Shown one piece after another: positions 14,401 to 20,400 of a stretch of DNA of 33,000 nt. Location of the stretch: NCBI GenBank assembly GCA_051294905.1, contig CM119379.1, positions 20,150,001 through 20,183,000 of the forward strand, written 5' to 3'. Source of the DNA: Botryllus schlosseri (lineage: Eukaryota). Within the stretch, counting starts at the first letter, position 1. Every line of letters starts with the position of its first letter. A model generated the notes under the pieces. It did not search any database and was not told the DNA's origin. It worked only from the letters and a program-made list of their open reading frames with translations. Made by a program: the position numbers and the translations under genes.

Positions 14401-17400
14401 AAGTTTTGTTAACTGAATATTAATATGAGTTGATCGAATGAATGTCAATCGTAAGCACCAGTGTGGTTTACCGGCAACAATACAGCGTCATCCTTAGCAC
14501 ATGTAGCCTCTGCCTCTTCATAAGTTAGCGGCTTCAAATGAAACAGTAATTCCATTTCTTTTCCATTGGAGAAATTCACCAGAATATATTCTAAATTATA
14601 TCATGAAGTTTTCAAAATTTAATACATATTATGTGGTGCATTATCCAGCCCTTACCAGGCCCAAAACAGGCTTCCTCGTATAAGCCATATCCTGGACTAT
14701 CTTTTGCAAAGTTGGCGATTTTATTGACATGTATGGCCGCGGTTCTGGCGGTCGCATTACGAAACCTGGAAATATCCAGCACCGGACCGTGACCATCTTT
14801 GGAACACCCACTCTAGACAAAAAATACTCAGTGGTGAGGATTAATTATTTGAATCTATGTTTGAACCGCAGAATATATCTTGATGTGCCTTGGGCTGAAA
14901 GAATAATAGGCAGAAACTTCTTTTAAAACTCATTAAACTTTTTAATAAATGAACAATAATGTATAGGATATACAGGATACATGTTTGAATTCATGCAAGA
15001 AAACAACATGGAAAATATATTTCAATAGAAAAATTAATCGATAAAATTAATCGGGTACACAGTATCATTAACTTACTTCTAAAAGCAATGATCTCAGGCA
15101 GTCTCCAGTTACTGGTGGATTGTATGTGCAACGCTCTGGCAAAACTGAAAAAGTGATTGAAAGCTAGTTATTAATAGGGATAATAATTGGACACGGGTAA
15201 TAACAATAGGTCAATAATCATATACATTTATCAACTTGACGGCATATATTTTCCTCTTTTGCCTAAACGTGACCAAATCTTTAATGTTAGCATTTTTCCG
15301 TCATTCAAATACAGTCGGAAGAGCTCTCTCTAAAAAGATTTCGCTAACCAGATTCACAAATGAAAGGGTTTTTCTTGACACAGTGCAAGTCATTCCACAT
15401 AGGCGGCGAAATATCAAGATTGATAGCACCGCAATCTTCATCGCACCAAGCATTGTTTGGCTCTGTCGCAAAACCCCCACGTTTATGCCACCTCTCGAAC
15501 GGAAAAGGTCCTGAACAAAATCAATTTAGGTTACGTACATGAAAAAAATCTTAACGCAGCAATAGTTACCAAATTCACACAGCACAGGAAGCTTGGTAGC
15601 GCAATCAATGTCAATCCACTTCATATTTTCAGAAATGGCCCCGCAATGTTGCCGATTACCTGACAAGTCGCCGTTTGGTTCCGTGGCCTTGTCCCAGTTG
15701 GAATATGCTAAAGAGTATCTATAACTGATCGGATAATTCATTTCAACTAGAACATGTCTGCATACGTGCGAAACGCCTTTTATCAGGCACGGGAATGAAT
15801 TTCCTTCTGTACCATGATTCGTGTATGTAAACTTGTTGTCCATCAGCTTGTTTCCAAACAGCCAAGTCAGTCGTGTCTCCTCGCAATGCAAAGAAGAACT
15901 TCCGAAGACTTGATGACAACATCTAAATGCACGAGTTTTAATGAAATGTGCATTTCTACTTACAATATAAACCCCATATAATTTATCATAGTTCATAGAA
16001 AATTGTCTTTTAGCTTTACTGAAATATTTCTTTCTGATCTCCCTCTAGGTTTCAACACTCGATAATGATAATATCTAAAGAATGATAACGCCCGTTATCT
16101 TTCAATGAAAGTGAAATATAATCTTTACAGCAATACCTCATGAAAGATCTTTCATAAAAATGCTTCCAAGATCCTTCGGAGAAACATCAGGGCATATGTA
16201 AATACATTTATACAAGGTATACTTAACAATGGTAGTAGAGTGTTGGCTTAAATGCTGAGCTTGTAATTTCCAATGCATTACGTTCGGTCTTAAATATGCA
16301 TTTATAATTACACAAAATCCAAACTGTACTAAAATTTGTTCTTTTTCATAATAGAATTCACCTGTATTGTTTGTCCAATCGCCAGATTAATTTCAGCGGA
16401 AGTGATATTTGCCAAGGTCCCGCCATACTTGTTGCAAAAGCGTTCAGTCGCCGATGCATTTCCAACCAAATTGGCACCCCAAATCAACCAAATTTGATGG
16501 TCCAGAGTAACGTTGGTAGCATACCAAGGAACTGTCCCAGATTCGATATCGGACAACAAATCTGCAACGCATATAATGATGGAAAGATCCATTATCGTGT
16601 CCTAATGATCATACCTCCAAAATCAGGCTGAGGGTTAGCCATCATGCCGTCGGCATACAACCAATTGCTTTCGCTATCCCGGTCACTTATTCCTATCCAG
16701 ACATCTAAAACAAAGAACTTGATAAATGTATCTGGTACGTTACGGCTGTAAAATCCAACGAACCTTCTTTCAGACTAAAGTTCCCGTTCAGCATCTTTTC
16801 AACTATCCAATCGTGCAAGTCCCGCGTTTTTGGACACGCCAGCTTGCCCCAAATACCTTCATAGTAACATAAGCCCAGGAGTAAGTTATGAAGATTATAT
16901 GCACGATAGAGTGGAGTTTTGCACTTATAATCTTGAATAGCTGTGTGAAACAGCGAAATCAACATTCAGGTATTACATACACTAATTACATAACAGTGAA
17001 AAACTTTACATTGGTGACCCAGTTCTAATTTTTCCACTGTGTTCATAAATATCTCCCGACTGGGACCTTTGTTACTTAATATTCTAACTAAGCACAACGT
17101 GGAGTGCATAGACTTTGACATAAATTTAGGATGAAATCGAAACGACAATACCAAGAAAAACTTCACAGATAGTCGGAATCACCTTCACAGTATTCGAATG
17201 CACCTTCCCAAGGCATCGGGACATCAAAAAAAAGAAAACTCTCGTTATTACGCTTCACCTCCATCGCTGCGTAATGACCTGAATACCAGTGAGAGCGAGA
17301 AAAACACTTGAAACTTGAATTTCCATAGCCACCTTCAAAATTACCTTTAGTCACCGAGCAATTTTCCCCCGAAAATATGTCAGAGCAGACGCATTCTTGA

Positions 17401-20400
17401 TTGGAACAGTTGTAAGTCCCATCGCACTGGGACCTGCATGGCTCCTCTACATGACAAAGTTCTCTATGAATGATGATATCTCAAACACAACCACAAAAGC
17501 CACTTCACCTTCAAGAACAATGTATTGAGCTGGATAGAGGCACGTAACTGAATGATAATTACAATACTGAATGAAGCACGGATAACAATCATAGCCTTGT
17601 GTCGGATGCTTACTGTCCATGCAGATGAAAGGTAATGCGTCGTCACATTCGTCAAGAGACCACATGAAGCTGTTTTCCGAATTAAACGACGCGCAATGCC
17701 GAGACCCGTGACTGTATGTGAACGAGGAGTCCCAGTTGCTGTAGTTACTCAAAACATCATGTGTTTCGACACTCGCCCAGCGAAATATCCCTAGAATAGT
17801 AAGAGATGGATCAGATTTATTCTCGTCTGCATAATTGATGCTTTGATGATGGAGGTGCGATACAACCTTTTAGGCAAGGTTATCTAGTCTGAACCACCTT
17901 GATTTTTCTCCTCCATGCTATCCCTGAATGCTGAGCGCCTAGCGGAATAGCTAGCTATAGAGTCCTTGGTATGACCCGGCTGGGTATTACACCATCTCTA
18001 TTCAGGATGTTCACAATTTAACACGGCAACATCCATTCTAGTACACATAAACTTTTGGTCTGATCGACAGACCGTCTCATCACAGATAGAACAAAATAAC
18101 AATATATCTGTAACTTAAACATTCACTTCAGAAAATGTCTTCCACGAAGCTGACTGAGTCTGCATTAAACCAAGCCCAACACTACAAACTACAGTGAGGT
18201 TCATTTATTCCTCACAACTATGCACTTCGTCTTATACACATATTGTTATCTTTTTTTAAATTTCACTAGCCCTTGTGTGTGACGCTCAACAAATTATTAC
18301 TTTAATATTTTTATGGTAACTAACTGAGACTACACAATCCTACAACAATCCTTGATACAATATTAGTCTGCAGTTACCTTCATCCCAAAAGTCATCAAGA
18401 CCTAGCCACCACTTTGAAGTGTTGAAGTATTCGTTTGCATGACCAAGTTTTTCCTCCAACTTCTGCTGTATGGCGCTACTCTCAATCTAACGATAAGGTA
18501 CCTATGATATCCAGCTGTAATGCCACATATACAATGAAAAGAAATACCGAAAAATGTAGCAACGTATTGCGACTTCGACAATACGTCTTTGCATCTTGAT
18601 ACGATTTTTTCCCGGTGTGAACCAACACCTTCATGCCATTGGATATTTCAACAAATTCTAAAAAAAGAATGATTATTAAAGTCTGGAAGTTTTCATAATT
18701 TAGATGCAAGTAATTACGAGCTTCGTGACATGATTCGGCATCAATTCCCAAATACGGTATTTTGGAGGCGTTACGTATTGCAATGAAATCTTGATATATT
18801 AACCACAAATTTGTCCGGTTGTAATATTCAAATTTAGCGAAAGGAAGACGCCCGTTCACTGGATCGCAGCCGCTCTGCAAGATAACAAATGAGGATGACG
18901 CGATCAGAAAGAACCATAAAATATAAGGATGCCAACCTGGTTGAATAATTCTTCCAAGCATGCAAGGCTGTGTGGAGGGAAGTATGTACATATTTCGGGA
19001 AATTCTGCAAAATACGACCTCAAATTATCAAAACTTGAGCACTTACTAACGCTAGGAACATAATTCATTAATTCTCGCGAGGTTGAATAATAGTAGTACA
19101 AGGCACCCGAAATCAGAATGTCAATAAAGTACACAAAATAATTCTACAAAAAATTAAAGGGCGTTCAGTGTACATGCCTTTAACAATATGCAGCAGCAAA
19201 AGCATTCAATACATCAGAGTTGTGGGTATTCACAGACCAATGAAGTAAATATAATTGTTCTCATACCAAATCCATAGCATTCCATTTGATCAGTAGAGTT
19301 GACCGCCATTATATCCAACACTTTCCTCAAGTCGGACTCATTATAAAGATGCCATTTCCAACTCAACTCCAGCCGCAAAGGATATGCAGTTCCCATTTCG
19401 ACACACCTGGTCTCGTTAACCCACAAATAATGCAAACACTCATCGCGAAGCGTAGGAAGATAAGTACAACCCTTGGGATATGCTGTACGGCAAAGAAAAC
19501 ATTACAATGCCGGCAATGTTACCATAAAAATGGCCACAGACTGACTTCTTCCAAAGCACAACATCTGAGATTGCGGATCAGAGTCTATTTCGGCTTGATC
19601 CCTGATTGATGCCATGTACGAGAGCACTTCTCTGAATATCAAGATTAGAACACGCGTGAAAGTTATCATGCAAATATTGATCATTACAAATAAATGAAAT
19701 CACAATGGCAATGCTAGTAACCGATGATATCATTGCTCTCCCCTTGATCAACTGTGTTTTAATACGTCTGCAAAAACATGCTGTCAAGCCTACCTCTGAT
19801 TGTAAGTACTGTAAAGCAATGTACGGTTAAATTCGGGTAGTTTCTCAGGATAACCAGTTCCAAACGTCACGCAGCGGACTTCCTCGATAAATATTGAGTT
19901 CAGACAAGACAATCTCGGAGGTCCGTAATACGTCAGACAGTTATTGAAATATTCTGTGCAAACATGGGTGAAATCGCAAGTAAAATTCCAATGTCGACGG
20001 TACTATTCTCACCCATGCCAAAACAGGAGAGCTGGTCGAACAAGCTTCCATTGTCGGCATCATGTCGTGACTCATTCATTGCATCGATGATATCCCTAAG
20101 AGGATAATGTAATGAATTAGTTGTATTAGAGGTCTTATCATCTACTGAGTCTTTTGACACGAAAACAGTTTTGTAGTATGCAATATAATATCACTGACCA
20201 TAAATTTGTGACGTTGAGTTCTGCTATTTCCGGTGAAGATAAATTCTTCGGTTCTCCATAACCTTCCGCGACACATTCGACACTGGTGAATATTGTGGAA
20301 TAGCAGCTAACGTCATTTGGCCCGAAAAACTTGGTACAGTTGTCAGGAAAAACTGCCAATGGTAAATATCAGCATCATAATAAGCTTGGCACTGTCCACA

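Follow-up and report, generated by a model that had tools for sequence, protein, structure and literature searches.

C-type lectin-like domains (CTLDs) are among the most studied animal recognition modules and, to our knowledge, have been described as contiguous units, either single or in tandem. The two ends of the fold lie next to each other, held by the pairing of beta1 with beta5. Nested domains are known elsewhere, for example in integrin beta, in which the beta-I domain sits in the hybrid domain and the latter in turn in the PSI domain, and in PLC-gamma with its split PH domain. Here we analyzed a stretch of 33,000 nucleotides (nt) of Botryllus schlosseri contig CM119379.1 (the window, to which all positions refer) that contains a large gene on the minus strand, the strand of every exon and intron described below. 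We consider it probable that this gene holds a true domain insertion, in which a complete CTLD, lodged in a phase-1 intron, sits inside the long loop of another CTLD in a giant mosaic cell-surface protein. The observations behind this reading are exon order, intron phases, the complementarity of the two outer halves, conservation, and the partial packing of a structure model. Domain insertion is in itself a familiar phenomenon, and as far as we found, what is new here is a lectin domain nested in a lectin domain; full-text literature searches, partly on ascidian lectin genes, returned no description of a split or nested CTLD or of one hosting another domain.

A complete lectin domain between two halves of another

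Exon boundaries were set by motif and homology. When N3a, the first insert exon, was searched against 1.84 billion protein representatives, seven proteins matched, including the fragments P0001 and P0002 and a 4,991-residue protein of Styela clava (P0005; XP_039270628.1, LOC120345301). A cluster listing provided P0008, isoform X2 of the same Styela gene, and a further search provided P0009, from the paralogue LOC120346535. Both genes encode uncharacterized proteins, with XP_077971250.1 a second accession of LOC120345301. Collinearity between P0005 and the window extends over about 2,900 residues, and the window gene is therefore the orthologue of LOC120345301.

The N-terminal part of the outer domain (N-part) is encoded by three exons. 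The first, N2a (17278-17183), carries beta1 and the start of alpha1, with the cysteine C1 in 'EYC', and its Styela counterpart falls within positions 2-64 of the Pfam Lectin_C profile. The second, N2b (16856-16764; 'IWGKLACPKT...'), supplies the end of alpha1 and alpha2, and its splice to the next exon (16764|16704) was seen in a contig of an RNA-like run (X3). The third, N2c (16704-16615; 'VWIGISDRDSESNWLYADG...PDFG'; Lectin_C 42-65), stops in phase 1 where the insert begins, and the junction 'PDFG|D' at this place is kept in Styela. A phase-1 GT..AG intron of 53 nt (16614-16562), which would lead to a stop after 7 codons if retained, separates N2c from the inner domain.

The inner domain likewise has three exons. 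N3a (16561-16362) encodes beta1, alpha1 (with C1 in 'ERFC') and alpha2, and in Styela lies within Lectin_C 4-107. N3b (15922-15766; 'FFFALRGD...VWKQADGQQV...PVPDKRRFA') ends at the donor CAC|GTATGC; it was extended to 15766 because it is collinear with Styela 'WYRKMYLPVPDKEDFA', and the Styela proteins share the 'WY..(x)..PVPD...FA' stretch, so that the end at about 15811 proposed in the first-pass annotation had to be moved. The C-part exon, C3, whose start was corrected to 15707 (15707-15570; 'YSNW..EPNGD..RQHC..WID..C..VLCEF'), matches Lectin_C 68-107 and has a degenerate calcium site. Downstream of it, a second phase-1 GT..AG intron (15569-15511; stop after 14 codons if retained) is only 59 nt long and leaves no space for a hidden N-half exon between 15570 and 15510. 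The next exon, Cx (15510-15349; 'PFPFERW..EPNNAWCDEDC..MWNDLHC..PFICES'), is an extra C-part assigned to the outer domain, with a full EPN/E/WND site and the cysteines C2, C3 and C4.

The split domain is flanked by an EGF-like exon directly upstream (17446-17345; phase 1 in and out), which is collinear with P0005 and P0009 and has weak Pfam matches to EGF_TEN/EGF_Teneurin, and by an exon for the first half of a cysteine-rich linker module downstream (15144-15077), entered in phase 1 from 15349 and collinear with Styela over 'ICES|V|LPERC'. The linker exon is followed by 14812-14656, and 14590, first taken as the exon after Cx, does not hold that place. Across these nine exons, from EGF-like to linker, the introns are GT-AG without exception, and splicing leaves an uninterrupted reading frame. 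The insert (N3a, N3b and C3) comprises 495 nt (165 residues) and Cx 162 nt; each is bounded by phase-1 introns, and skipping of either keeps the frame.

Profile searches with Pfam Lectin_C agreed with the exon coordinates on the order proposed from the first pass, i.e., outer N-part, complete inner lectin domain, and second C-part. Among single exons of the window, Cx matched profile positions 71-106 (E = 1.5e-5), C3 68-107 (E = 2.8e-5), and N2c 42-65 (E = 0.075). In the contiguous Styela P0009 region the N-part covered 2-64 (E = 1.3e-8), the insert (P0009:5285-5462) 4-107 (E = 5.3e-9), and the extra C-part 66-106 (E = 6.7e-5). Two partial matches, 2-64 and 66-106, on either side of a full one (4-107) indicate that the outer pieces are complementary halves of one PF00059 domain and that the insert is a complete domain. 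The outer domain thereby departs from a single contiguous chain of ~110-130 residues by a 165-residue break between profile positions 64 and 66. When 16615 was joined to 15510 in silico, an uninterrupted lectin-domain sequence resulted, as had been predicted, and the flanking introns of the insert are both in phase 1, as first read.

The arrangement in two Styela clava genes

The comparison with orthologues suggested in the first-pass annotation showed that both paralogous Styela genes carry the N-part, the complete domain and the C-part in the same order. The nested order is present in P0005, P0008 and P0009, with junctions of equal length ('PDFG|D...' and '...CEF|GPFPFERW'), and in these three RefSeq models from two genes all parts occur together in one predicted protein. 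An arrangement common to the two paralogues must therefore predate their duplication as well as the split between the Styela lineage and that of the window. Identity between the window and Styela was 29-47% for the EGF-like exon, 41-45% for the N-part, 47-50% for the insert and 65-67% for the extra C-part, making Cx, whose use the first-pass annotation had treated as uncertain, the best conserved of all segments. Of the three readings offered at first (a nested 'Russian-doll' protein, a skippable cassette, and mutually exclusive C-halves), it was the nested one that gained from the collinearity of all parts in Styela, the conservation of Cx, and the packing of the model described below.

Further searches added few relatives. 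A long query matched the two Styela genes only, a Styela query of 451 residues, P0009:5130-5580 with scoring on the nested region, matched no mid-length relatives, and a fragment query for open reading frames (ORFs) spanning the junctions returned a single match, the genomic-type ORF P0001. The window's own annotated protein was absent from the protein search results. P0001 and P0002 are short fragments from one Logan sample (SRR25569784) and represent different copies of N3a, with 85% and 57% identity to the window, respectively (46% for Styela P0005); judging from these fragments, the related organism sampled seems also to have two paralogous genes with the inner domain. In addition, P0005 contains 46 extra residues with two cysteines (~1207-1252) inside the inner C-part, which are absent from the paralogue and the window and represent either a lineage-specific insertion or an intron left in the gene model.

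Binding sites and cysteines of the two domains

The four canonical cysteines of the outer domain, C1 (EYC) in alpha1, C2 (EDC) in beta3, C3 (LHC) after beta4 and C4 (FIC) in beta5, and its VWIGI core are kept in the window and both Styela genes. C1 in '[ED]YC', from the N-part, and C4 in 'F[IV]CE', from the extra C-part, are invariant across the three sequences. The best solved relatives of the extra C-part are E- and P-selectin, to which it aligns at residues 79-117 with EPNN-x3-DEDC and MWND equally spaced. At site 2 the sequence match is between EPNN-AWCD-EDC...MWND in the window and EPNN-RQKD-EDC...MWND in E-selectin, again with equal spacing. In mannose-binding protein and selectins, the sugar-binding calcium is coordinated by five ligands, namely the EPN/E/WND residues. 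The outer domain is thus predicted to keep a complete calcium-sugar site of the mannose/fucose type, and Cx encodes every one of its EPN, E and WND residues. The outer N-part also has a D and an E after the WIGL-type motif ('ISDRDSES'), which we take, from the numbering of mannose-binding protein A, to be residues of an auxiliary calcium site, of the site-1 type. A fifth cysteine of the extra C-part, in 'NAWC' (codons of 'NAWCDEDC', 15460-15440), occurs in the window and both Styela genes, and neither lectin domain offers it an evident partner.

The inner domain has its own cysteines in the window (ERFC, QHC, IDC and VLC). In all three sequences its calcium site has Q-H-C where the canonical site has E-x-C, and WID instead of WND; in Styela, EPN is further replaced by DPN. 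Two of the five calcium ligands are lost, and the calcium-sugar site of the inner domain is, on these residues, probably inactive.

Structure modeling of the nested region

AlphaFold2 was run on Styela P0009:5190-5520, which served as the contiguous reference. An 11-row alignment gave an unusable model (mean predicted local distance difference test score, pLDDT, of 35), and a 24-row alignment (A1) raised the mean to 49; in deeper alignments MAFFT repeatedly misplaced ordinary lectin halves. In the A1 model the blocks of N-part residues 1-65 reached pLDDT 82-93, and the last block of Cx (321-330), with the strand 'FPFVCEVE' that carries C4, reached 88. Since the ordinary C-halves added in A1 were aligned to the inner C-part, any bias of the alignment worked against a pairing of the N-part with Cx.

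In VIA-align comparisons whole solved carbohydrate-recognition domains (CRDs), each covered end to end, superposed on model residues 8..330 (Z 10-11, root-mean-square deviation of about 2 A, 80-93 residues). They included collectin-11, langerin, DC-SIGN, lithostathine and many snaclecs. The superpositions support, at the level of a model, a single lectin fold around the insert, to which the N-part and the last portion of the extra C-part contribute.

With two N-halves and two C-halves available, the pairing could instead be crossed (outer N-part to inner C-part, and inner N-part to Cx), or halves could pair between two molecules, as in the loop-swapped dimers of snake-venom lectins. The long-loop region is the swapped element in snaclecs, and snaclecs are among the best structural matches to the model. 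We nevertheless consider such pairings quite improbable, as the inner N- and C-parts are contiguous, normally spaced and recognized as one Pfam match (4-107), and the last Cx strand was placed with the N-part at pLDDT 88 versus <30 for the last strand of the inner domain.

Reads and transcripts across the locus

Reads were placed on the window from two contig runs (X5, DNA; X3, RNA-like) and two raw RNA runs (X13 and X15). Coverage by X5 was even across the region and one 967-nt contig covered 15075-16043, and the exon order is therefore not an assembly error. Splices in X3 were limited to 16764|16704, 15077|14812 and 14656|14590, and they indicated that introns of 59-65 nt are spliced normally in this gene.

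Several results weigh against a nested protein. Structure prediction of the nested form, proposed in the first-pass annotation as a check, came out divided and was made on the Styela rather than the Botryllus protein: the N-part and the last Cx strand were confident, pLDDT was <50 for the EPN loop, for beta3-beta4 and throughout the inner domain, and the contacts and the disulfide were unreadable in the output. The three Styela sequences are gene-model predictions from RefSeq. No reads of X13 or X15 fell on the gene, with hits only to a high-copy repeat (17876-18049), and X3 was of low depth (3-13) and partly unspliced. The junctions 16615->16561, 16615->15510 and 15570->15510 had no read or contig coverage in the four runs. 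One X3 contig retains the 59-nt intron 15569-15511. Another, the deepest on the gene (13.4), retains the 204-nt intron 15348-15145, whose donor, GTTAGC, is unusual, with the next two introns spliced, and read-through of the retained intron ends at 'FICESG*'. The unspliced X3 contigs, at depths of 3-13, are most simply explained as pre-mRNA. The contig with C3 and the unspliced 59-nt intron also departs from the genome at 15492, 19 nt into Cx, at an internal AG|GT, leaving 30 letters unplaced; either a cryptic donor or the end of an assembly may explain the departure.

Regulated splicing would account for the same exons differently, with the 495-nt inner domain skipped as a cassette, or with C3 and Cx used as alternatives after the same N-part (a degenerate versus a canonical site), and such forms may coexist with a nested isoform. 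All boundaries are in phase 1, and the joins N2c+Cx, N2c+C3, C3+M1 and EGF+N3a are in frame and lectin-like. C3 and Cx lie 59 nt apart, and their similarity (z = 6-11) extends to the top values among non-orthologous C-halves, with other pairs overlapping this range. On the other hand, inclusion of both C-parts keeps the frame, unlike in many mutually exclusive pairs, and the normal splicing of another 59-nt intron in this gene (16764|16704) makes steric exclusion between C3 and Cx unlikely. A form joining the N-part to C3 would leave the N-part of the insert without a partner, and the three Styela models, from two genes, include all parts. We therefore rate regulated splicing as a possible but rather unlikely explanation of the locus.

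The contig that reads through the unusual Cx donor to a stop might also be taken to mean that Cx, or the outer N-part, is a relic of a duplication, in decay and outside the functional protein. Cx is, however, the segment best conserved with Styela, with its five calcium ligands and C2-C4 intact, and the N-part has WIGI, C1 and an open frame in all three sequences. Given the conservation of Cx, this explanation is nearly excluded.

Possible origin and folding of the insertion

We infer that the insertion arose through exon shuffling and that the outer domain folds as a whole, and we propose functional roles for the two domains. A three-exon, 495-nt lectin module of phase 1-1 would have entered a phase-1 intron of the outer domain. 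Comparisons within the gene are consistent with this: the outer N-part resembles the N-parts of neighboring lectin domains (z = 5-8) more than that of the insert (z = 0.4-3.5), and the N-part of the insert scores higher with unrelated lectins. Because the outer N-part is closer to those of its neighbors, the similarities weakly favor a foreign phase 1-1 module shuffled into a phase-1 intron over two local tandem duplications. The resemblance between C3 and Cx noted above is not far above that of other pairs. An origin by tandem duplication ('N N C C') is weakened by the fact that the two N-parts are not each other's nearest relatives.

In the folded protein, the N-part (beta1, alpha1, alpha2, beta2 and the 'W.Y.DG' strand) and Cx ('FERW', the EPN loop and beta3-beta5) would meet around the insert to form one fold, and the canonical C1-C4 disulfide would span the insertion. 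An outer fold around an insert is possible because the two ends of the inserted CTLD adjoin. The inner domain is more likely to be a non-sugar-binding or spacing module, held beside the sugar site of the outer domain.

Other features of the gene

A second interrupted lectin domain is possibly encoded downstream (13841-13101, 8953-8248 and 8057-7755, minus strand). In Styela its N-part matched no more of Lectin_C than positions 6-64, with an E value of 1e-3 that is below the Pfam cut-off. It is followed by a 4.1-kb intron and then by weakly ricin-B-like exons (E = 4e-4), and its end, 'HFEDSC..RYVCDD', resembles a lectin C-end and was unrecognised by Pfam. A broader proposal, which we regard as doubtful, is that this ascidian protein family uses the long loop repeatedly to dock whole domains, that a ricin-type module may be carried by this second lectin domain, and that splicing of a phase-1 cassette in or out switches between a plain and a 'gated' sugar-binding receptor.

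A cysteine-rich repeat encoded by two exons ('YP.NC..YYGPHP..CL.T.W...C...G..P', then 'N.T...AD.GN...Q..CFG') occurs about 20 times at 26400-19200 (minus strand), and no Pfam family was matched to it; Styela P0008 appears to hold several dozen copies (uncounted). The intronic very-high-copy repeat at 17876-18049 has a ~50-nt core (about 17903-17952) and a summed depth of 91,518 in X5. Some raw RNA reads there have poly-T tails, and a search of Rfam gave no match.

Comparison with known systems

A conserved split CTLD would show that the long-loop region accepts the insertion of a whole domain and that exon shuffling into a phase-1 intron within a domain can succeed. It would also offer a natural template for engineering a lectin whose sugar site has an accessory domain anchored next to it. 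In annotation, such a protein comes out of domain callers as a half, a full and another half domain, which resembles fragments or errors.

With selectins, collectins, langerin and DC-SIGN, the outer domain shares the WIGL-type core, C1-C4 and the E-selectin spacing of EPNN-x3-DEDC and WND; it differs from canonical CRDs in the 165-residue break, which falls after the 'W.W.DG' strand and before the 'Y.NW' motif, and in the extra 'NAWC' cysteine. The CTLD, EGF and sushi modules of selectins are also found in this protein, arranged differently. Members of the mannose receptor family and DEC-205, the latter being the best solved match of the outer N-part, are likewise large surface proteins with several CTLDs, but theirs are strictly tandem and not nested. 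Snaclecs, which are among the top structural matches to the model, share a plastic long loop; theirs reaches into the partner subunit, whereas here the loop would hold a whole domain of the same chain. An analogy may also be drawn with integrin beta and PLC-gamma, in which a complete domain sits in a surface loop of its parent, the two pieces of the parent fold together, the ends of the insert are adjacent, and symmetric phases permit shuffling. The locus described here differs from both in that parent and insert belong to one fold family, the C-type lectin-like domain.

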